DNA of 64,000 nt from Calcarisporiella thermophila CBS 279.70. Lineage: Eukaryota > Fungi > Calcarisporiellomycota. Every line of letters begins with the position of its first letter. The stretch's first letter is position 1. Positions 607-56,611 of this stretch are shown here, one piece after another. The stretch lies in contig NW_027192206.1 in assembly GCF_041956535.1 (NCBI RefSeq), positions 1 through 64,000 of the forward strand, written 5' to 3'. The position numbers were made by a program, and so were the translations under genes. The notes under the pieces were generated by a model. That model saw only the letters and a program-made list of their open reading frames with translations. It had not been told where the DNA came from and made no database searches.

Positions 607-2014
607 TCAGCTCTAAAATGATTCATGTCCATTTGTAATTGAAAATTTTGACTTTGTGTTGTAGCAGGAAAATAAATACATCCTATCTACCATAGTTTAG
701 CGTAAATAACGAGAATATAAATCAAATATCTCCTGCGCTAAGTTAAACACGTTAAAAATTAATGAATATTATGACTGAAATTATTTGCTTCTTGGCAACC
801 CTTTGTAGTACAAAAACGTGACCCTCGAAAATAATGAGAAATAAATGCAAATAAAATTTTCGTCAGGATGTTTGTCTGGCTTGGTTCATTTATAGTTTAT
901 TTCAGAAAAGTTGTACATCTTGAATAAAGCAGATGTCGAAGGTGATCACCGGGAATGATGATGAGTGTTCACCGAAGTTTGAAGAGTAATTAATAGGTGA
1001 TTGGTCGTAAAAGCAGTATCATCCAACTTTATATTGTACTCCGTATTACATCAATAGAAACTGAATACTATTTATCCAAGCCGTAACCCTGTATAATGCA
1101 GATGCTTATACAATCGCACTAATATAATTGTAATAAGCACAAGTAGGGTTCGACATATACTAATGTTTATTACACTAAAATAAGTTCGTAAAAAGACGTA
1201 AAGTCAATTCGTAAAAAATTCGGTTAAAGATTCGGTGAAGACGTAATTAAGTTCTACAAGTGGTTTTATACGTAAAGTTAAAATATCCGAGATCGATTGT
1301 CGATAAATTAAACATATATTAGTTATTGTACTTGTTACAATAATACTGTAAATAGATACGAGAGAAATATGCACATATTATTTGCAAAACTTCAATTTGG
1401 AAACATTCTGTTCAAAAAGATATTAATATTCATTCATTTATACCGAAATATTATATCTACTTTACAATATATCTTGCTTTGTTAATCTAGATTATCTTTT
1501 TAATGCTACATCTCCAATTACAGTACATAATTCAGCATCGACATTAATAAATGTTTATACTCTCTTTTCTTTGGTAGAGCGTTTCATCCAAACCGATTTT
1601 CCTTATAGTTTCATTGGAACCTTCAATCCTAACCGGTCATAGAGAAAGATAGTTGTTGAGTGTCAAGTGATATTGATGTAGAGATCATTGAATTAAATTT
1701 CTAAAGTTGAAGCTAAATGAGAGCCCCAAATACGAGGACCCCTTATTTTTGTTTTATGTACTGTGGATACACGCAGCTTTCTTTCTTTGGCGTGCGACTG
1801 TTTAAATGGATGGTTAATTTTCACTGAAGTTATATTGCAATACAAAGGATGTGGTCGCAAAGTACAATATATGGAATATTCTAAGCTTGATCAGATGTAC
1901 TGAATTTAGAAATTAGGGAAATAAAATTTCAGGAACAACTGCAACAGTTAATTTATTACCATGTATAATATCATTATTAATTGGTCGAAAAGGAATTAAA
2001 AAGGAGATAATTTA

Positions 2015-2896
2015 TTACAATAAAGAAACCGTGGGGGACATAAGTAGGTTCAAGTTTAACCAAGATATAAAGTAAACTTCATAGGCAGTTTTTACATCAA
2101 CATCCAAGACGAGCTTTAAAAATATCATTCCAAATATAAAGATATTGATTACTAGGTAAATAAGTGAAGGAACTGTCCTAGCAATTGGATGGAGAAGTTC
2201 TTCAACAATGACAGAAAATAATATCAAAAGTGAAGTAAGAGCATGGGCGATCCTTGTATATTTCATTCCGAATCGTATGGGAAGGGTAGTTCTTCCAACC
2301 TTTCGGTCACCTTCGACATCTCTAAGGTCTTGAATAGGGATTAATAGAGTCAGCTGCGTGGCGATGAATAATATCCATCGATATATTATTGGATCTTTCC
2401 TGACGTCTACCTGATTCATAATACTCATATCGACTACGATTATTACGTATACGCCAGGAAATAATAGTAAGTTCTTCATAAATCCATCCTTCCCAAAGAA
2501 TTCCGTGAAGTTTAATAGAATTGAGCAACCGATCCATACTGTGGTTTCCGTCAGATACCCTAGGTGATACCCCCAAAGCATATAGATTATAATTGATATA
2601 ATCAGGTGTCCCCAAGCTCTTTGTATAGTAGTGAGTCCAGAAGGAAGTGGTCTATTTGGCTTGTTGATTTTGTCTTCCTCTATTCCCGCAATGTGATTAC
2701 CTACATTGAATTGATACAGATAAAAAAGCTGATAAATGATCGTTCGCATAATTCTTCCAAAGAGTATGGACATTGGCACATGACGAAGATGCCAAGCTTG
2801 TGAAAGCCCAATAGATAATCCTGGAATCAGAGCAGCTCCAAGATTGCTCTTCGCAAAATGATAGATTTCCTTTTCTAAAGTAGTAATAAATATCAT
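2015..2896 (-). CDS. UbiA-superfamily membrane protein, UbiA-type terpene cyclase-like (293 aa, intronless CDS)
   Basis: Multiple TM segments. Motifs NHIAGIEEDKINKPNRPLPSG (NxxxGxxxD..NKPxRP) and QDLRDVEGDRKVGRTTLP (QDxxDxxGD). Confidence 0.85.
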   Translation of the reverse strand: MIFITTLEKEIYHFAKSNLGAALIPGLSIGLSQAWHLRHVPMSILFGRIMRTIIYQLFYLYQFNVGNHIAGIEEDKINKPNRPLPSGLTTIQRAWGHLIISIIIYMLWGYHLGYLTETTVWIGCSILLNFTEFFGKDGFMKNLLLFPGVYVIIVVDMSIMNQVDVRKDPIIYRWILFIATQLTLLIPIQDLRDVEGDRKVGRTTLPIRFGMKYTRIAHALTSLLILFSVIVEELLHPIARTVPSLIYLVINIFIFGMIFLKLVLDVDVKTAYEVYFISWLNLNLLMSPTVSLL

Positions 2897-4885
2897 AAGC
2901 AGATCTAATATCTATAGAAAAAGTGGATAAATCAATTTAGAAATGGAAAATTAAGCAAATTTCAGAAATTGTTTCAGAAATTGATCTGGCATATTACTTT
3001 TGATTTAGATATCTAACTGTTGATAGAAGAACGATTCTTAAGCAGAAAAAATATCCAAGTCATGAAAAATCAGTGAAAGTGAAACATACATTTGGGATCA
3101 TTTTATATTCTATAAGAATAAAGCACCCTCCTAAACATATTTCAGATTTTTTACTTAATTTACATACCATTAGAGTTTAATTGACCTTGAATATAAAAAC
3201 GAGATTTTAACTGTCCAATCCAAACAGGATTAAAAAATAATACAATCCCAAGTTAAATCCAGAAAGTAATAAAATAAATTGCTTTATATTTCAAAAATAG
3301 AGTTCGTGGATTTATTGGAGAGAAAACTGGTGTTTTAATGTACGAACTTGGCTTTGTATAATAAGAAAAATCCTGAGTGCTTTGTTATAGTTCATAAAAA
3401 ATAGTCTAATGGAAATCGTAGCTACAAATTGTATTAGAACCTCAACATTATAATAACTTTGGCAGGAGAAAGACGTAAAAGTCAGTTAACTACATCCCCT
3501 AAACTGATTTCATGGATACATATTATTCCTATTAAAGTAATAAACTGGAGACATCGGAGTCTTGATTTTGAATAAAGAAAATATATTTCTACATTTTGCA
3601 GATTTTTTGTTATAGGTACAATGTTATAAATTTGATGCTCATCGCAAATCAAAATGTCTCTTAAAAGTTTCTCGACAACTTATTATTTTTTAAATTCAAC
3701 CTAAAGATTCCTTCACAAACATATCTAATATATAAAACATTTATATTGTTGAATGGATCACTCGCATCATCGTTCTTATGATAATCCCATATGCAATGAA
3801 AATATCATTTCTAACTTTCAATACGAAAAATAATAGTTTATTATAGAAAATTTCATTTTTTATAAATTGAAAATACTATGATTACAACATTTTATTCTTT
3901 TTCTCTACAGACTCATCATAACAAATGATCAGGATAAAGAAGAGTAAAGTACAAGTTGACCACCATTAGTACATCCTTCGACTTTAATAAGATCTTAAAT
4001 CTGAAATATTTCTTGCTTGCTAAGATTTTACCACTGGAGTGGCGCTATAAAATTAATCAGCAAGATATACGGATAAAGTTCGGAATCGAGACTTCCTATA
4101 ATATGGCGTGCGAAATCAATGCAGTGAGAAGTTACCCAATTTAACAGGGCACGTTTTGCAACAAGCAAATATAGCATATTTCAACCTCTATGTAATATTC
4201 GTTTATTATATATGCTTTTTATATATTTATTGTTATTAAGTTTATTCAAATATGTATAATGTTTTCATTACAATGCATTCTAATAAAATACTAGATCTCT
4301 TTTATTTTTATTGTTCCTCACTTTGCCCGTCACTACAATAATAATGATTTCGTCTAAAGGAAAAAACCATGTATCATTTAATTTAATGAATTAAAAAAGA
4401 TTTTAAGATAAATCATTGTTATTTGCGAAGAGAGTTACATGAGGGTATTCTATTATATACTGGGGAGCATCAATGTGAGTAGTTTTATTAATAGTATAAA
4501 CATTTTGTAAATCGGAATTTATAGCCTAGAATTATATAAATTTTAACAATAATAAGCTATCACAATATTTTTAGTTGAGATGCAATTTTGATGGGGATAT
4601 TACCAAGTCAAATGACTATCCATTCTGTGATATTAATTCAGCCAAGTATTTCATGCAATTGTGTTGCTTTGATTTAAAAAAGAATTTCAGCCACAGCCCA
4701 CGTCATATACCTGCTGAAAATGGGAAAAAGGTTAGATTCCGAAAGGTCAAAAGATTAATTTAATTTTGCCAAGTCATCACATTCTGAAGCTTGGCAGATA
4801 TATGGTATAAAATAGTCTGGAAATTGTACAATCTCTCCCACTCAATAATTTCTTAATCATCCAGTAAGTGTCCTGCAACTATATA

Positions 4886-6058
4886 ATGGATATTTCGAAG
4901 TTGTTTAGTGTCAAGGGAAAAGTGGTACTTATAACCGGTGGAAGTCGTGGGTAACTATAACTTGATATTATTTTATTGTGGTCTCAGGATTTTAAGTTAT
5001 AATTGACCTTTTTATGTCTAGTATTGGAGAAATGATTGCTACTGTAAGAATTTTTCCTTAAATTCAGTCGGATGTTCTCAAGCTGAATTCTATTCAACTA
5101 TCTTTTTCAATATTGCTGGTATAGGGCTTCGTTTCAAATGGAGCTAAAGTCTACATCGCAAGTAGGTCAGTTGATGTGTGCAATCAGGTAATGCGATAAG
5201 CTGCTTGTCAATGCTTTCACTTATAGCTTACGAGTTATTACAATTTTTTCTAACCCTTCAATTTATTATATCATGCTTAAGGTCGCTGCCAGATTAAATG
5301 GACAAGGACCGGGCCAATGCATAAGCATTCCTGCTGATTTGAAGCATCTTGATGGAATATCTCAACTAGTGGAAAATTTGACGAATCGGGAAAATCACCT
5401 CGATATTCTAGTGAATAATGCAGGAGTGACCAATAACCAAGAATTCGACACCTATACCGAGGAGAGTTGGAACGATATTTTTGACGTCAACTTGAAAGCC
5501 CCTTATTTTTTGACCAAGGCGTAAGTAGGGATTTTGATATTGAGAGTAAAGAAATGAATCTTTGAAATAAGCGTTCTATGCGACCTATCTACTTAAACAG
5601 TATACTGATGCATAGCTTACTACATTTTGTTTCTTTTTATTGACAGCCTTATTCCTCTGCTAACTGCTAAATGTACACAAGAAGATCCGAGTCGCGTAAT
5701 TATGATAGGCTCTATTGCTGCAATGATCAACTCACCCATGCCGAGTTATGTGTACAGTGCTTCTAAGGCCGGTCTTCACCGTATGACAGAAGCGCTTGCT
5801 CCTCTGCTGGGCCGTCGCCATATTACCGTGAATTCAATTGCACCAGGAGTTTTCCCATCTGAAATGACAAAAGACATAATCTCAGAAGAAAATGAAGCCT
5901 TTTTGAGTGAACTTAAAAAAGCAATTCCAGCTGGGCGCATTGGTGAATCTGAAGATATTGCGGGAACATGCATTTATCTAGCATCGCGCGCTGGCGCATA
6001 CACGAATGAAGCGACCATTGTGGTCGATGGTTGTGTCACATATGCTAACAAGAGTTAA
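4886..6058 (+). CDS. Classical short-chain dehydrogenase/reductase (RhlG/FabG-like), multi-exon
   Basis: Spliced reading MDISKLFSVKGKVVLITGGSRG|IGEMIAT|GFVSNGAKVYIASRS..., with TGxxxGIG, NNAG, YSASK catalytic motif, NSIAPG and VDG. GT-AG introns including a micro-exon near 5022-5043. Confidence 0.92.
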
Positions 6059-7565
6059 CTATCGTAATGGATGATGTTGCTTGATAAGAAGAAAATCAAC
6101 TGTCTGTGAAACCTAAGCCTATATGAAAATAATGTTAAAACTTAGGTATAAGATCTTGAAATTCCTGAACATTTACGAGTTATTTTACTTATTTTCTATA
6201 TAATTCCATCTGATTTATTTTATTGCTTGTCTCATATTATTTCTATTAAAATTTCTCTGTCTTCCAGCCGAATCGCATTGCAAATGACCATAATAGCAAT
6301 ATTGGTTTCATTATAAAAACCTTTTCTTATTTTTTTATCGCTACTTCAACCTCGTTACAATATTTCATAAAAATAATAAATGCATATTCTAATCGTGGAT
6401 ATTTTATAGAGAATTTTATTTTTGGGTACTTTTATGTATTTATAGATCAACAATATTCGCGTACAAGTAAGCCTTGTCCGAGATTTTCCCTGGAACAATT
6501 CGATAAATCATTATAGTGCATTCTCGACATCTTTTACTTTATACTTCGATAATGGATGATTTTTCCCTCTCACAACCTTTGCAAAACTCCTCTTATGAAA
6601 AATACTCTTCCTGTAGATCTTTAAGTCCACAAATCGTAATCTCTCAACAACAGCATTTCGCATACTCTTCGTGTAATACGACTCCTCAGTATTATATTAA
6701 TATCATTCTACTGACATAATACGAACAAACTTATTCATGTGAGTGATTTTATTTTCGAGCAGCTTGCTACAAACCCTTTCAAAATGTTTCATCAGATAGA
6801 GACTATTTACAATACAGTCATTGTCAGGTTCCGTTATCTATTACTGGGAAATTGTATAATCACAAAATGTCTCGTTTTCTTCGATTCATTTAACTCGTTT
6901 ATGACTATTGTTTGATAATACAAACAAACCTCAACAAACTAATCCAGAATTATCTCTCAAAGCAGGTTTCATTTCTAAACCTCTCTTCCACGATGATTGA
7001 TCATCACATAATCGCAGCAGAAATATTACTCATCTCTAATTAACAATAAACAATCAAATGACACTTTTGTAGGCTAGTTTTCTGCAATAAGATTAATTTA
7101 TCATTTTCTTTAAAATTATAAGAAGAATAATACCGTAGTATACCCGATGATCTTGGTCACAAATCATTTAAATTACTAAGAAAAGAATTTACCATTTTTG
7201 ATAAAATATTGGAAATGCCATTCCAAATGAAGCTAAAACACGTGACAATTCTCAGTAACAACATGAATCTCACCCTGATTGAAAATGGATTATGAAGCAA
7301 AAAGTGTTCGTCTTAAGACACTTGAACTCGCGATACCAATGGGGCTGCAAGTTTGAAACACACGGACTACTTAAGTAGATCGCGATCTAATCAATGTACA
7401 AATTTAGGAAAGCAACACGAATGTGAACTCGAAGAGATATCAAAATTTTTGAATAATAAAATTGTCACAGTTAAGTGGGTGGCTGAGTTAGGGAGGCATA
7501 ATTCAAATTTCAACTCAAGGCTAATCAGAATCTAACAACGTGAAAAACCCCAATATGTCATGTTA

Positions 7566-7577
7566 GATAAGCTTATC
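7566..7577. promoter_or_regulatory. Palindromic double GATA element (GATAAGCTTATC) upstream of the acyltransferase
   Basis: Perfect 12-bp palindrome holding two inverted GATAAG sites, about 30 nt before TATATAAA (~7608) and about 90 nt before the ATG at 7664. Confidence 0.35.
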
Positions 7578-7663
7578 CTATTGGGGACATTTAAACCCAG
7601 CAATCCTTATATAAATATCGAGATTTCATTAAACCTCGAAAATTTCGACTCATTTAATTAGTT

Positions 7664-8977
7664 ATGGTCACTTCTCAGGTTTCCGAGCAAAAACTCCATG
7701 CTCTGAGCAATCTGGACCACATTGCAACACCAGTATATGTTACAATCTATCTGTTGTACCCGAATACAAGTGATATCGCTTCTGTTATGAATGATGATTC
7801 AATGAAAGCATCATTGGCAAAATTGTTGGCTCTCAACCCCATTCTGGCCGGTCGCCTAGAAATACATGGTAACTCGCCTAAGGACAAACGAATTTTCGTC
7901 AACTACAGTGAGCCATTTACGGTTGATGAAATGTATAAATCTCAAAATTTCGATGCTTGCTATTCAGAGCTGGAGCAAAATGGGTTTAACTTGGATCATG
8001 AGAAAATTCAATTTCATCGAGCACCAGAGCCCGGTAGCATGTCGCAGCCGCTTATTCAAGCGCAGTTAACGCGCTTCCGCGACGGTGGTATCCTTCTTGC
8101 CGTTAGCATTTCACATTTAATTGCTGACGGGAAGGCAATGGCCAACATCGTGAGAGTATGGAGCGAAATTAATCGAGGAAAATCTGCCCGACATTTTGTG
8201 TTTGAAAATGCTAATCTCGCGCCAACTTGTGATGCACCGACATTAGATCATACTGAATTTGGGCCAGTTCCCACTATCTCAAAAGGCGATCAATTCCAAA
8301 AGCGTTCCGTGTATCTCCGTTTGACTCGCGCTCAGCAGCTAAGTATCAAGGCGGATATACAGGCCCTGCGGTCTGCGGACGACAAAGGTTGGATATCGAC
8401 GCATGATGCCCTGTCCGCAATATTATGGCGCGCGTACGCACGAGCGCTTGGGCTTTCCAAATCGACAGACATATTACGTCTTGTTGTTGTGAAAAATTTG
8501 CGAGCTGATGCCGGATTACCAGTTGAGAGTATGGGAAACCTTTTAGGCATATTTATGGCTTCAGCCACTGGTGACGTGGTAACTGATGCTGCTCAACTCT
8601 GGCACTTGGCGCGCATCTCCTGGAAGGCTAAGCGACGATATGACGCGGCTATCTACCTGCAATCACTATCGAATGCTATCGAACAGCTGCCTGATAAGTG
8701 TTTCACTCACGTAGTATGTGCCGATCTCGGTATGAATGATATTGGTATCAACGACTGGGCCTCACTGGGTTTCGATTTGGCCGATTTCGGTACCGGTACA
8801 CCGCAACGGGTACGTTTGCCCGACACAATTGGTCCGCCGTTCCTTTTACCGGTACCAGGGTCGGACGGCGACATAGAAGTACGGTTGTCAAATATGACTT
8901 CCATCGTCGATGCAATGGTGAAAGATGAGTACGTGAGCAAATATTTGACCGGCAACAATGCTCCGGCGGCTGTCTAA
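7664..8977 (+). CDS. BAHD/transferase-family CoA-dependent acyltransferase (437 aa, intronless)
   Basis: PILAGRL, QLTRFRDGG, catalytic HxxxD (SHLIADG), STHDALSA and C-terminal DFGxG (ADFGTG). Confidence 0.92.
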   Translation: MVTSQVSEQKLHALSNLDHIATPVYVTIYLLYPNTSDIASVMNDDSMKASLAKLLALNPILAGRLEIHGNSPKDKRIFVNYSEPFTVDEMYKSQNFDACYSELEQNGFNLDHEKIQFHRAPEPGSMSQPLIQAQLTRFRDGGILLAVSISHLIADGKAMANIVRVWSEINRGKSARHFVFENANLAPTCDAPTLDHTEFGPVPTISKGDQFQKRSVYLRLTRAQQLSIKADIQALRSADDKGWISTHDALSAILWRAYARALGLSKSTDILRLVVVKNLRADAGLPVESMGNLLGIFMASATGDVVTDAAQLWHLARISWKAKRRYDAAIYLQSLSNAIEQLPDKCFTHVVCADLGMNDIGINDWASLGFDLADFGTGTPQRVRLPDTIGPPFLLPVPGSDGDIEVRLSNMTSIVDAMVKDEYVSKYLTGNNAPAAV

Positions 8978-11900
8978 GCTCTGACAGAGGACAGGGCCTT
9001 TTTCCCATAGCCAAGGATAGTATTGCCCCTTATTTATTATGCTACTCTTCATTTGTAATGATCATTTAAACTGCATATTATTTTGTACGATATATTACAA
9101 GATGATTGAGGGTGTGATTATCATATAATGACCTCCTCCATTGCTCTAATTTACTTTCTCTTATATACATTTTTTTTACTTAATTATTTCTATTTAAGTT
9201 GAACTCTTGTGATCTTTGATACTGATAAATGAATCCCAAGCGCAATACCATTCAATGCAGCCCTAACTCTAGCTATTCTCTCTAAAACAATTTATATCTC
9301 ATTGCTGTTCACGAAGGCAAAGATATATATGATATGACTTCTCATCATATAAACTAATTATTGGCAGCTTCATCTAGCTGATAAAGTTGAAATAGCCGAG
9401 AACTCACTACTAATGACAAACGAGCGAGCATGCTGATGTACGATATCGAAAACATGAGGATTAGCTGCAAGAGATGTACTACATGAATTTCCAACCATAC
9501 TCCAAACAAAACGATAACAATATTAAATCAAATTTTTTTCAAGCTTTCGATTGAATGCTTATACCGAGCATAACATTTCCAAGCAGTGTCCACATTGAAG
9601 CTAGATGCACCAACGCTCTTTCCCCCGCCCCAGTTAGAAAGGTGCATCTTTTCGAGATGACAGGCTCGCATATAAGCAGTGAACTCTTCCATGTGCTCGG
9701 CGATTACTCCGCAGCTTTACTGCCAATGAGCTACAGTGGTTCTACGGGAACAATTTTGTACATCATATACCAGTATCGGCTAAAGAATAGATAGTGGAGA
9801 AATTGCTAAGAGTGATTCCGACACGATGCTGGTAGAGAGTAGTGAGAACAGCTATCTAGTATCTCCACAGGACCCAATCAGACCTTAAAGTCTCTACTCT
9901 AAACCGTGAGATAGAACGGCCCTTGCAAAAATTTAAGCTAGATTTTTTGTCAGGGCGCCCAAACTCCATCAGATGCTAGAGATACTTATCAGCACCCTAA
10001 GAATTTGAATTTCACCCAACTAGAAAAGTGAAATAAACATTAGAGATAATTCAATTTACGGGTCATTAATTGTATATAATGGATCAATAACGCAATGTGA
10101 AAGAGAATGTCTCACCTCTCCCATGCTCCACGACTTGGCACTAACTTTTGATGGTAAACCAGGTCTATTTGGTTCTTTTGATATCTTCTGGTTCATCTTA
10201 AATGAGGCTACCAGCGATATCTTTTTATGATCAGAATGGATCTATGCTTTTCACCGACTACTACGAATGTTTTCATATTGGATAGAATCGCTCTTGATTT
10301 GGCGATAATTCTTAGTTACACTTTCAATCGATTTTTCTCGCTTGCCCAAACCCCCCCCTTTCCGGCTTCACCACATTGCTGCCTTAATCGCTCTCTCTTA
10401 TCCCTAGCATCCAGCTTTATTCGTTCTCGTGATTGGCGGGCTAAATTAGTGATGCGCTCATGCGTCAACAGTATTCTCACCAATGGCGTGCACTTTTTTC
10501 CTTTGCTCTATTTAAATTCTCGAATATTTCAGTAGCGTTGCTTTTTAATCCAACCATGAGGTATGGAATAGAAACGACATGGAACACCGTATATATCGGA
10601 TAAAGATCGCGGTTTAACCAGTAACACCATCAGATGTATGGTGAAGCATAGGGGTTGACCATAAGCATATCATATTACAACACTTGATCAGCCCATCTCT
10701 CTTCATTAAGTCCAATCACAACTGAACTCGGGGGATACGCCACTTTTGTAATAATGGAAGAGAAGTGCCCCGCGGTGTTGCAAGAATTCAAGCCCTTTTT
10801 TGCAACGACCGCCACCGGGAAATCAATTAAAATGTCGCCCGAAATTTGAATACCTCGGCAGATAAGTCGCCTGCGGTCAACCTATTCTCTAATTGGTTGA
10901 CTAACTTTGGAAGCAAGGTCGGCAGGACCTTTATATTCCCCAGGGCTGCGGAGCAATCGCCGGATTCCGATTCTGTATTGAGCCATAACGATCGCAATCA
11001 CCTGATAAGCACCCTAGGGGGACCCATCGGGACACCATACTGGTAGGCTTGTGCTCTGAAGATTTGAGCCAAGCTATATACATGTATTTGGGAAAACACA
11101 TTCCTACTTTAGGTCAGCGCTGCAGGATCCAGGTCTCAGAACAATTTGCCAGTTTACGAGGTCTTTCTTATAAATTGACCTCCTTGGTTTCCTTTACGTG
11201 CTGCCACAAATTGCTTCTCTACATAATGGGTACATCATAGCATTTTTTTGGGATATATTTGATTTTCAAGTACAATTTTGACGATGCCAAAAAGATTAAA
11301 CTAGTGATACTACTTCAAGAAAGTTTGTGGCTTTGAGCACCGTCAAATTCCAAGGCTCACAGATGGTCCATCCACAGTTTTCTGATTTTGACTCATTACA
11401 ATTGCGATTTTGATTGCTCTTTAATATTGCAAGCTAACACGTTAAACCAAGATCGCGTTAGAAGAAACCTTTGACTCATATATAGGAACTACTTTTGTCG
11501 TTCAGAAGCAAACATTCACACCTAATGAAAGCATATATGGGAGGAGATAAGTCTTGCTAGAGGGATCTTTATTCTCGAGAGAATAGTTGAACCTTGGTTC
11601 ACTGCTTAAGGTGCAAAGAGTTATAACTCTCATTTTAAAAACCATTAGGCTCTCAAAATGTCCATATCTGAAAAAGGTATTGGATCCAACCTGGATAATA
11701 AGAGCATGCGATTAATGCTGAAGCAGTAAACTAGAGTACAATGCCTTGACTAAATGTAATTGTTGCCAGATTATTGATTACGTTTGTACTTAATCTGCTC
11801 TTTCCGAAAGAGGCTTCTCTATGGGGTAATTGGAAGCAATCCACCTCAACTGAAACACGTACACGACGCTTGGAATATTTGAGTGGGAGATTCAAGATTG

Positions 11901-22929: not shown

Positions 22930-25349
22930 ATGCCCAAATCTGAAAAGGTTTTGGATTCTTCTCGGGTGAAGAGGGCATGCGACCAGTGCAGAAGTAAAAA
23001 AATAAAATGCGATGGTTTAGCCCCTGTTTGCGGCAGTTGCCAATGCATTGGTTGCACGTGTACCTATGCTGCTGTTTTCCGGAAGCGAGGTCCGCCAAAG
23101 GGATATGTCGAAGCCATCGAGACTCGCCTGAATCGCGTACATGAGATGCTTTTGGAATTCTTTGGTGATGACCCGAGACTTGAATCAGTTTTGGCAGAGC
23201 TAACTGCACCTATAGAAACGTCATCTGGGGACTTTATCACTCTCCGATTCCAATCTCCTAATGATAACAAATCAAAAGTTGACCCTTCACGCTCGTTCGA
23301 AGTTGCGGAAAATCAATTAAATTTATTTTCAGGAGATCTCACTATATATGAGGAGATCGAGGATTTTCGTTTCCATGGAAATGCCAGTGGCGTATACTTG
23401 ATGCGCAATAGCGCTCTCCACAACAGCGGGTATTTAAATCTAGGGGCGAATCAAACTCTACATCGTAGAAGTAACTGGCAACAGTTAGATGTAAATCCTT
23501 ATGATGTTCCTCCATCAGATCTCTCTGATCACCTGATCCATCTATACTTTGACAATTTCCACCCACTATTTCCGGTAATAGACAGACCCGAATTTCTTCG
23601 CTCCTTGCGCACAACACAACCTCCTCTCTTGCTACTGAATGCAATCTATGGAATTGCGGCGCGTATCTCTGATGACCCGAGAATAAAGTCATTTACATAC
23701 TCAAAGTGCCCTGAGCTAGTGGGTGGAATTTTCTTCGAACGTGCCAAACTCCTTCTGGATTGTGAGTACGACACCCCCAACCTATCCACCGTCCAAGCGG
23801 CCCTGCTCTTAGCCTATTACCAGCCAGGAGCCCCTCGGCCAAGTCGCTCTTGGATATTCGGCGGAATAGTAAGTAGCCATTGCACTTGAAGTATCGTGAA
23901 TTGCTGATTTACACTTCATTCCCAAATTCCCATCGATAGGCGATCAGGATTGCGCTTGAATTAGGGCTTAATCGCTATTTTTTTTCCATGCCCCGCAGGG
24001 ATCGAAAATTACGAAAACGCGTGTATTGGTGCTGCTTTGTGTTGGACCGTCTACTTGCAGTTAGGCATGGTAGACCGATTTCGCTTGACGAGCGCGAATG
24101 CAATGTGCCTAGCTTCCAAGCAGAAGACGAGGAGGAGCCGTGGCCCGTTGCAAATGCAAATCATTGCCAAGTTATATCCAATTTTGGCTATTTAGTGCAA
24201 CTCTATCAGATACTCGGCCGCATACTTAATAATATCTATTCCATCAGCTCGGAAAGAAGCGTTGTTCTTTCCAGGAGCCCAAACATCTTAGTCAATTCTT
24301 TGCATCATGCCCTACTTTCTTGGTTTCACAAGTTGCCTCTGCATTTACGGCTACCCATTTCCAAACAAACGCCACATCTCTCAGCTGTCTCCTCGAATAT
24401 GCATATTATATATCACACCTGCGTGATTTTACTTCACCGACCCTTTTTACCTCTCTCGTGCCAAGAACCTACTCCAGATCTACTTGCTTCGACAAAGGCC
24501 TGCAGTGAATCCGCCGATACCATCATTGATTTGGTCTATAGCCGCTATAACTGCGGTGGAGTAATGCACATAGTAGAGCCCAATCTCTATTCGATTTTTA
24601 ACGCAACCACTTTCCATTTGTGCTATAATACTGGCATAGATTTACGTGGTATTAAACTAAACACTTTAAAGGGCTTGAAAGTATTGCAAGCGTTGGAGCC
24701 AGTATGGTTTATGTCGAAGATGCTTGGAGCAATGATTCGTAATATTGCTTTCATACGTAAAATTGGTCTGGAGGACAATGATTTGGACAGTTTTGAAACT
24801 CCCAAACCACGCTCTCCGAAAGGATTTTATAATAATGGGATGACAACAGAGGCTGAGGGAAGCGGATCCCGTAACGAGATTAATCCAAGCATTGGTAAAT
24901 TCACACTTACAGCAGATATGTTATCGAGCTATTAACTTAATCTCTATTCACTAGTTGACCCGGAACTTTTGAACTTTTTTGGAGCGAACCCGGATACTAT
25001 GCAACCGATTAATCCATCCGATTTTTCGCTCCTCCCTGCATCCTCTATCCCCCACCCTGATAGTTTTTTGCTGGATTCGCTCTGGCTTCTACAAAAACAA
25101 CATCAAATGGACGCACAGACAGTTTCCAATCCGATCACCACTACAAACGATATTAATACAGAATCCCCTACACCTTCTTGGGATGATAATTCGAAGGCCT
25201 CACTCTCGCAGACAAGCCAAGCCTTGCCCTCTCTACTCCTCCAAATGCTCTCTTCTCAAACAAGTTTCGAATCAACTGAGCCGTTGAACTTTGGGACGCG
25301 TATGCCAATGGACGAGGATGAGTGGGGCATATTCATGATGCGGCAATAG
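22930..25349 (+). CDS. Zn(II)2Cys6 transcription factor with Fungal_trans domain (introns 23869-23939, 24895-24954)
   Basis: ACDQCRSKKIKCDGLAPVCGSCQCIGCTCTY; RKRGP; YFDNFHPLFPVID; AIRIALELGLNR; RKRVYWCCFVLDR..GRP; ILLHRPF. Confidence 0.95.
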
Positions 25350-54190: not shown

Positions 54191-56611
54191 TTACTCGTAT
54201 AAACTAGGCGTATCTATGGAAAGCATCTGCATCACCTCTCCGCCATCGAAATGCTTCCTACACGAGGCTATTTCGTCCTGATCGAAACCCCCCACTGGGG
54301 TGATGGGAGTGATGGGAGTGATGGGAGTGATGGGAGTGTTGGGAGGGAGAGTAGAAGGAGACCTTTCCTTTGGGGCGATATCTAAAGAAAGGAGAGTAGT
54401 AAGTACTAGGGCTTTAGCGCACAAGTCGAAAAAACAAGAGCCAACACGAGTATACCTGTGGTGCCCGGTTGCGATGCGACGAGGGAAAACTCGTCGAGGA
54501 TAGCCGTTACCATTTCCTCCGACCACCCCTCCAGTTCCCGCTGAGACCGAAATTTCTCAGCCGATGGCTTTTCCATCCGCGCGGACACCCCTATGGCGAC
54601 CAGGTGCACGGAAGCAGGCGCAACTTGGTTGGCCGATTGTACTTTAGCGATGGGGGTCAAACTAACACGAGGAATGACCACAGAGACCAGCGGCTGGCTC
54701 TCATCGTCGGTGCCAGAGGGCGATGGAGAGAGTTCGTAGATGAAGTCCTGCCTCGAACGAGCCAGCACGTCTTCAAGCGTCCGTATTAAATTAATATCGC
54801 GGATGCCGAGGTGTTTGCTCTTCAATAAGTGCAGTGTCCTGCTCAGATACAACAGCGACTCCTCGCGGGCCTCACTGGGTCCGGACTCCGCCAGGAGAAG
54901 ATGCACACAGGCGCTTGTGTTCAGCCCGAACACGACCATGGTGTGCAGCATTTGGTTGTCGGGGAAATCAAGTACAAATTTGGCCAAATTCACAATGGTT
55001 GCGGCGGGGATAGTACACTCCGCAATGGACGTGTCCTCAAAGAAGAGGAACAAGTCGCCCCTTCTCTTTGGGAAGTAAGTGTGAATGCGAAGAATGTTGA
55101 GATAGAGCAATAGTTCAGCCGCGTTGATGGGATTCAAGTTATGTGGAATCAAGTTCATCAATCGATCTAGATTGAAACGGAGCGATGTTTCGAGCGACCC
55201 TGTGGGGAGCTCGTTGTCGCCGGCAGGAACCGCATTCTCGGGATCTATCATGGATCGAAATTCGGACATGGGGACAATACGAAGCCACACTTCCGACAAG
55301 ACAACCGATAGGTAGGCCGAGTTGTAGAAGGAACGGATTGAGTAGGCGTGCTCTTCCAGGGGCGACACATTCCCATGGGCCTTGTCGTAAGCATACAAGA
55401 GGGATTCGGTCTCGTCCTTCACCGGCAATCGCATATTCGTCACCACCATATCCTTGTCAATCCTTGACCCGATCTGGAAATAAGCCCAGGTGAAAGCGAT
55501 GCGCATCGCCCACCAGATGTTGTTTCGGAGCTCCCGCTCTAGAGGATCGAGCTTCTCCCGGAATTGGTCCGAGTCCTGCTCCGGTATCCGCAGCTCGGTG
55601 GCCATTTTCCATGCCGTTGCTAGCAGGGCCATTCCTTTGTCCGTCTCGGACACGTAGATCAAATGGCATCCCAGGATGAAGAGGCCCTGAATTTTCTCAA
55701 GGGAAGCCTTGTAGGGCTCGCTCTCAAGCAGCGAGAGGGCATATTCCGCAAAAACCGAACCCGGTCGCCCATTCTTTGTTTGATTGAAGATAGGGATGCA
55801 GGTCATGTTTAATGCTGAGGCGAAAATGGCCGAGAAGAGGATGGGGTCGATACGATGCTCGTTATAATTTCGGTAAATGATGGTGCGATTAAGAATGTTC
55901 GGGAAAAAATGCATACGAAAAAAAGCATGGATGAGTAGAAGGGCTTGGTCATCGGTGATGGCTTTAAGAGGATCTCTATGTTGAAACATGGGGATGGATG
56001 GATCAGCGCCGTCGTCGCTGGAAATCAGCTTTGGGAAATTCTTCTGAACCGTTTCGCCAACGCTCAATGAGCTCATTTTCTCGATCAAGATGCCGAGCAT
56101 TTCATTGATCAATATCCTGGTGCCTGGCGAGTGGCCGAAATGCATCCCTTGTGCCCAGCGCCACACCGACACGATATCCAGTGTGGTGGAAGGCATTGAT
56201 TTTATCTATGAAAAAATAAGACGCGTCAATTGAGATCCTCATCCGAGCCATGGCATATGCCCCGGGACTGCTCACCCCCATCCCGCTGATGATATAGTCG
56301 AGTTTATTGAGAAGCATTTGGAATTTCCCAAACAACGTCCCCTGCTCTCGCATGCGGAGCAGCAGCTGGTGGTTGATGGAGAAAAGGATCCGCTCGTTGG
56401 GGATGACGTTGCGATTGGGGCGGCCTCGACGCGCGCTCTTCTCCTGGTACCGACACTCGATTCCATTCTTCTTGCAGCGAGAGCAGCCCCCCAGATTCCC
56501 GTCGCATTTCTGCTTCCGCTGGTGGCAAGCTTGGCAAGCCTCCTGGATGCGGCGCTTCTTGTCTTTCGCAGGCTCCTGGAGGAGCAGGGGCCGTGCTGAG
56601 CTTGGCGGCAT
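54191..56611 (-). CDS. Zn(II)2Cys6 transcription factor with Fungal_trans-like region (exons about 56611-56276, 56205-54456, 54381-54191)
   Basis: ACQACHQRKQKCDGNLGGCSRCKKNGIECRY..RRGRP; IQGLFILG; AWKMATELRI; LERELRNNIWW. Confidence 0.9.
54300..54344. repeat. 9-bp coding tandem repeat (GTGATGGGA)x4 plus one variant copy
   Basis: Directly visible. Encodes (TPI)n in the last exon of the minus-strand TF. Confidence 0.9.

Follow-up and report, generated by a model that had tools for sequence, protein, structure and literature searches.

Do the three genes near the start of one contig of Calcarisporiella thermophila make up a terpenoid gene cluster, or do they lie side by side without sharing a pathway? 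The locus is found in the first 64 kb of contig NW_027192206.1 (C16, 736,877 b), a stretch referred to here as the window, in an assembly of 28.2 Mb and 116 contigs, the others of which are given by like handles. It consists of a gene of the UbiA-type terpene synthase (UTS) family, a short-chain dehydrogenase/reductase (SDR) gene and a gene for a BAHD-type acyltransferase, which a first-pass annotation of the DNA had joined into a pathway of cyclisation, oxidation or reduction, and acylation. Judged from its sequence, the UbiA protein is probably a terpene synthase with a prenyl diphosphate as its substrate. That this intramembrane enzyme acquired its SDR and BAHD neighbours by independent arrival, with the three-step pathway the less likely course, is a broader reading to which we give about an even chance.

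The UbiA gene (2015-2896, minus strand) is a single exon encoding 293 aa, with a match to PF01040 at an expect value (E) of 1.6e-19. Motif I, NHIAGIEED, occupies residues 67-75 (2672-2698, minus strand) and fits NxxxG/AxxxD, and motif II, QDLRDVEGD, occupies residues 189-197 (2306-2332, minus strand) and fits QDxxDxxxD. The first-pass annotation had described NxxxGxxED and QDxxDxxGD in place of NDxxDxxxD, and this description stands: NDxxDxxxD, the first motif of aromatic prenyltransferases, has no match in the UbiA protein, in which the position of the second Asp is held by Gly. The characterised UTSs Tps1A/2A, Fma-TC and EriG carry NxxxG/AxxxD and QDxxDxxxD, and mutagenesis found the motif Asp residues to be essential, among them the three Asp residues of motif II in Tps1A (PMC9835599). 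Sponge and bacterial UTSs carry NQxxG/AxxED and DxxDxxxD (PMC13483135), and in published trees the non-fungal UTSs fall within the same superfamily clade. The assignment of the motif pair to UbiA-type terpene cyclases is likewise supported, as the pair equals the published UTS motifs (PMC9835599, PMC13483135). Motif I follows the loose form NxxxG/AxxxD; against the strict form NQxxG/AxxED it has His for Gln (Q68H), a Gln that is carried by 98% of 41 aligned relatives.

An exhaustive profile-free search returned 1199 relatives of the UbiA protein at E<=1e-3, the best of which is only 39% identical. Motif I was found in 116 of 154 retrieved proteins and motif II in 137, with NDxxDxxxD present in one only. 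An alignment of 42 sequences has eleven invariant columns, and the window protein keeps every one of them (N67, D75, R82, D190, R192, D193, G196, D197, R202, T204 and G210). By analogy with characterised enzymes, D75 of motif I and D190, D193 and D197 of motif II would hold Mg2+ against the diphosphate of farnesyl diphosphate or geranylgeranyl diphosphate, and ionisation would give an allylic cation that is cyclised in a membrane-embedded cavity, with no aromatic acceptor taking part.

A maximum likelihood phylogenetic tree of 48 rows (LG+C20 PMSF) was constructed without Fma-TC, EriG, Tps1A or other characterised UTSs. The UbiA protein falls inside a clade of 41 motif-sharing rows, which is set apart with support of 97/95 from DGGGPS-like proteins, from proteins annotated as 4-hydroxybenzoate prenyltransferases and from the COX10 of the same genome. 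A phylogeny against Fma-TC, EriG, Coq2 and DGGGPS had been proposed in the first-pass annotation; of that comparison, the rows of this tree bear on the separation from DGGGPS-like proteins. Within the clade, the protein belongs to a subclade (100/97) whose other members are environmental sequences and a protein from the rotifer Adineta. Moving outward, a cluster with a Lichtheimia hyalospora fragment branches next (98/86), before Naegleria (95/97), and the Dikarya sequences (Aspergillus, Zasmidium and Mycena) all fall outside the subclade. The motif-bearing family could also be found in Adineta steineri (P0008/P0183), Naegleria lovaniensis (P0098), Calypogeia fissa (P0138), Ostreobium (P0019), Dentiscutata erythropus (P0139) and many bacteria. 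The rotifer gene from Adineta is flanked by ordinary animal genes (T-box, G-patch).

Characterised UTSs are known from the Dikarya, bacteria, a sponge and red algae (PMC9835599, PMC13483135, bioRxiv 10.64898/2026.10.28.762581). The window protein resembles those of the Dikarya, namely Fma-TC (beta-trans-bergamotene, Aspergillus fumigatus), EriG (cyathadiene, Hericium) and Tps1A/Tps2A (alpha-bisabolene, Antrodia), in its membrane UbiA fold, its motifs I and II and its length of about 300 aa (PMC9835599). It differs from them in its non-Dikarya host, its separate subclade and the His in motif I. Bacterial UTSs have reportedly been described by Yang et al. in 2017 and by Alsup et al. in 2025, as cited in PMC13483135. 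With these and the other non-fungal UTSs, sponge AcUbiA1 (PMC13483135) and LsUTS/LpUTS from Laurencia (bioRxiv 10.64898/2026.10.28.762581), the family of the window protein shares a patchy distribution across kingdoms.

An AlphaFold model of the UbiA protein, built on the 42-sequence alignment, is all-helical, with a predicted local distance difference test (pLDDT) score of 90.1 and a predicted template modelling (pTM) score of 0.87. Foldseek matched the model to 6M31, 4TQ4 and 4OD5 with a probability of 1.00 and template modelling scores of 0.65-0.69, the best folds being DGGGPS 6M31 and AfUbiA 4TQ4, and DGGGPS is also the closest solved structure by sequence (E 4.6e-9). No UTS structure was found in the PDB by either the sequence or the fold search. 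The likeness to DGGGPS would fit a prenyltransferase that acts on an acceptor, be it a lipid head group, as for DGGGPS, or a small molecule, and not a cyclase. Many family members are labelled '4-hydroxybenzoate polyprenyltransferase' or 'UbiA family prenyltransferase' in the databases, which points the same way, as do the divergence of the subclade at several conserved positions and its want of a characterised member. These labels, however, are automatic, and the absence of NDxxDxxxD, with Gly at its second Asp position as in characterised cyclases (PMC9835599), argues against a prenyltransferase, as does the split of the clade from DGGGPS-like sequences. Moreover, the primary roles are already covered by COQ2-like and COX10 genes. 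The nearest solved proteins (DGGGPS 6M31 and the archaeal UbiA homologues 4TQ3/4TQ4 and 4OD5) are true prenyltransferases, yet their identity to the window protein is about 20% or less, and 6M31 and 4TQ4 are also the best PDB matches reported for the active LsUTS-2 (bioRxiv 10.64898/2026.10.28.762581). A role as a prenyltransferase is therefore considered unlikely, and a terpene synthase remains the probable assignment.

Several points nevertheless weigh against the terpene synthase. The tie to experiment would run through motifs and literature, as the characterised UTSs are not rows of the tree, and the subclade of the UbiA protein is itself without a characterised member. Of 41 well-conserved positions, 9 carry a non-consensus residue in the protein, with Q68H, W138G, W157M and D271A among the changes. 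Active Laurencia UTSs retain canonical NxxxDxxxD and DxxxD motifs (bioRxiv 10.64898/2026.10.28.762581). Because these enzymes keep the prenyltransferase motifs, motifs alone do not settle function either way.

The same departures from consensus, among them the replacement of the motif I Gln that 98% of relatives keep, could be taken as signs of a gene that is inactive or decaying and yields no product, as could its position in AT-rich DNA at a contig end and the state of its only paralogue. Apart from COX10 (C5) and a COQ2-like gene (C10), the sole other UbiA-family locus in the genome is a decayed second copy at C18:33214-33901, with an identity to the window gene of 68% across its full alignment, rising to 73% in the best 668 nt. 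This copy has lost about 190 nt at its 5' end, carries several frameshifting indels and has a stop inside motif II. The window gene, unlike the C18 copy, keeps a frame of 293 codons open in DNA of 37% GC, and this full-length frame carries every invariant residue of the family and gives a confident AlphaFold model. Several of its departures are common to relatives in the subclade (e.g. His at 97, and the loss of D271 in P0007), and the C18 copy retains the unusual Asn-His opening of motif I. Since they are shared in this way, the departures look like traits of the lineage and not like decay, and we consider an inactive gene very improbable.

The remainder of the trio was then compared with the picture given by the first-pass annotation, the layout of which holds up well. 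Pfam detects all three families, and with the gene models they span 6963 bp (2015-8977), in keeping with the three genes in 7 kb that had been noted. The UbiA and SDR genes are divergent, as described, across a spacer that had been put at about 2 kb and measures 1989 bp from ATG (2896) to ATG (4886); this intergenic region (2897-4885) has 28% GC. A further 1605 bp separates the SDR stop (6058) from the BAHD ATG (7664). Open reading frames in both gaps and at 9-13 kb matched no Pfam family, and no hidden cytochrome P450 (P450) or further gene was found there. The annotation was also right that the window is without a P450: no match lies in the 64 kb, the nearest on the same contig being at 172.7 kb, and no oxygenase lies within 160 kb of the trio. 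Regional GC is 31-35% around the trio, as against 44-53% at 44-58 kb, and the genes themselves differ, with 37% for UbiA and 42-45% and 47% across the rest of the trio. The start of the contig shows no telomere repeat.

The SDR gene (4886-6058, plus strand) encodes a classical SDR of 266 aa in five exons (4886-4950, 5022-5043, 5125-5187, 5282-5520 and 5647-6058, plus strand, from the splice model). Searches were run exon by exon, with adh_short and adh_short_C2 of Pfam matched on the two largest exons, and the joined model was translated as a check of frame and motifs. Each of the four introns, of 71-126 nt, has GT..AG ends, the coding sequence of 801 nt has its only stop at the end, and the classical TGxxxGxG, NNAG and YxxxK motifs are all kept (TGGSRGIG, NNAG and YSASK). 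By sequence, the best solved relative is RhlG (2B4Q, E 1.7e-24). The gene has at least 10 paralogues in an expanded family, 53-82% identical to it in amino acids over the last exon. Copies other than that in the window are on C19, C14, C49, C38, C11, C8 (two, in tandem), C4 and C17, and several are no more than about 30 kb from a contig start. The closest paralogue, at C19:656582-658126, shows 77% nucleotide identity over 1554 nt, introns included, and is 81-95% identical per exon.

This C19 paralogue lies in an apparent triterpenoid cluster, C19:633500-664100, no more than 40 kb from the contig end. A protein with both SQHop_cyclase domains (N and C), of the oxidosqualene/squalene-hopene type, is encoded there by an intronless gene of 731 aa (C19:641382-643577, minus strand), together with four P450s (C19:633528-635228, 645414-647228 and 648791-650125, minus strand, and 651342-652922, plus strand), an SDR (C19:647392-648168, plus strand), a PF02458 acyltransferase (C19:653974-655440, plus strand), the SDR paralogue itself (C19 at about 656.6-658.1 kb, minus strand) and an MFS transporter (C19:662521-664026, plus strand). 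Because two other cyclase-like loci exist (C19:50.4-50.9 kb and C38:85.1-85.7 kb), the clustered cyclase copy is an extra one. In its layout the locus is reminiscent of the helvolic acid/fusidane type, the helvolic acid cluster being one that unites an oxidosqualene cyclase, P450s, an SDR and an acyltransferase. Both C19 and the window pair an SDR with PF02458 near a contig end, but the window has a UbiA-type synthase in place of the oxidosqualene cyclase, and neither a P450 nor a transporter. Two non-genic matches also link these regions, window 1121-1339 being 90.6% identical over 233 nt to C19:660375-660607 and window 9284-9750 being 69% identical over 479 nt to C19:664907-665378; both probably belong to repeats that are dispersed among contig-end regions.

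The acyltransferase gene (7664-8977, plus strand) is intronless and encodes a BAHD-type protein of 437 aa, with a match to PF02458 'Transferase' at E 1.5e-35. Its HxxxD motif, HLIAD, begins at residue 151 (8114-8128, plus strand) and a DFGWG-type motif, DFGTG, at residue 374 (8783-8797, plus strand). Among solved proteins, plant hydroxycinnamoyl transferases come closest, with Tri101 next, and a word search returned one relative only outside the genome, at 26% identity. Paralogues within the genome are 23-29% identical, several of them intronless, and the identity between the window and C19 BAHD proteins is about 21-29%.

Could the three genes work as a minimal cluster, in which the cation is quenched by water to a terpene alcohol that the SDR oxidises or reduces and the BAHD enzyme esterifies? 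Some features favour it. All three genes are intact with their catalytic motifs kept, UbiA and SDR flank a common divergent promoter region of 2 kb, and the 7 kb hold no other recognisable gene. The fumagillin cluster, too, combines a UTS with an acyltransferase. In the apparent C19 cluster, an SDR paralogue adjoins a BAHD gene in the company of four P450s and an extra oxidosqualene-cyclase copy, so that the combination of SDR and BAHD has a precedent in this genome for terpenoid tailoring. This precedent speaks, as indirect support, against chance neighbours in the window trio, and it is to be counted against independent arrival.

The comparison with other loci points the other way. The first-pass annotation had named synteny in related genomes as a check on its pathway, and in the loci inspected here the result was negative: an SDR or PF02458 neighbour is found in 0 of 11 related UTS-family loci (sampled from a eukaryotic metagenome contig, Adineta, Aspergillus carbonarius, a public-run contig, Chitinophaga, Streptomyces, Myxococcota, Dentiscutata, Mycena, Nostocaceae and two environmental contigs). 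P450s are present in four of the 11 and a polyprenyl synthase in two. In a Streptomyces and a Myxococcota genome, the family member directly follows a polyprenyl synthase gene, with a P450 also at the Streptomyces locus, which speaks for the assignment of the UbiA protein to the UTS family. Whereas bacterial members can sit in such operons, none of the three polyprenyl synthase loci of this genome (C1, C25 and C13) is near the window gene. In Aspergillus carbonarius (KV907493.1, 130971-151987), the UbiA member is beside a DIT1_PvcA gene of the isocyanide synthase type and a P450, which suggests a terpene-isocyanide locus.

Nor did UbiA and SDR duplicate together. Homology to the C18 copy is confined to window 2032-2698 and that to the C19 paralogue to window 4750-6271, the gene body only, each ending at the gene edges, and no SDR or BAHD match was found in C18:14001-54000, about 19-20 kb on each side of the C18 copy. 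Promoter words shared between the divergent region and the BAHD upstream region were not above the shuffled expectation, and the two upstream regions have no CGG-N-CCG pair in common. The nearest Zn2Cys6 gene, a candidate regulator, is 14 kb downstream of the acyltransferase, with other genes between. Since no oxygenase is nearby, acylation would need the synthase itself to deliver the alcohol, the cyclase having to supply the hydroxyl. A working minimal cluster of this kind is possible but the weaker account, and the pathway proposed in the first-pass annotation did not gain the synteny, joint duplication or shared promoter words that would have favoured it. More doubtful still is a young terpenoid-ester cluster, free of P450s and built on the eukaryote-rich subclade (Mucorales, bdelloid rotifer, Naegleria), for which the SDR would have been recruited as a duplicate from the C19 cluster. 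A joint arrival of all three genes by horizontal transfer was considered and rejected, given the eukaryote-rich subclade of the UbiA protein, the intronless paralogues of the BAHD family within the genome and an SDR that is an intron-bearing local duplicate.

Independent arrival is the most likely account of the adjacency. Because the C18 and C19 homologies end at gene edges and gene GC differs across the trio, single genes would have reached the AT-rich contig-end region independently of one another. The SDR and BAHD genes would then be intact members of accessory families that have multiplied in the genome, often near contig ends.

The host itself is in agreement with the early-diverging fungus that the first-pass annotation had supposed. 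A cobalamin-dependent methionine synthase with a Met_synt_B12 domain is encoded by an intron-bearing gene at C2:1490983-1491958, and this enzyme, MetH, has as far as is known been kept outside the Dikarya and lost within them. A genome search for CotH gave no match, and none was found in the genome for the HET domain or the flagellar radial spoke 3 family, both of these last searches being without a positive control. That the host is a fungus is shown by three Zn2Cys6/Fungal_trans genes in the window; such genes lie at 22930-24935, as two open reading frames split by an intron, and at 54406-56196. With MetH present and CotH, HET and radial spoke 3 unmatched, the genome is that of a non-flagellated, non-Dikarya fungus. 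Calcarisporiella thermophila is reported to be one of two Mucoromycotina without CotH (PMC10079182), and the marker results fit this species.

The UTS family is already known, with uncharacterised database homologues in Lichtheimia and Dentiscutata, and the window gene is an added member; the literature searched held no characterised UTS from zygomycete-grade fungi. For natural products, the apparent triterpenoid cluster on C19 may be the more useful lead. The intact, intronless UbiA gene is in turn a candidate for expression and, together with the Lichtheimia and Dentiscutata homologues, it shows that the family reaches zygomycete-grade lineages.

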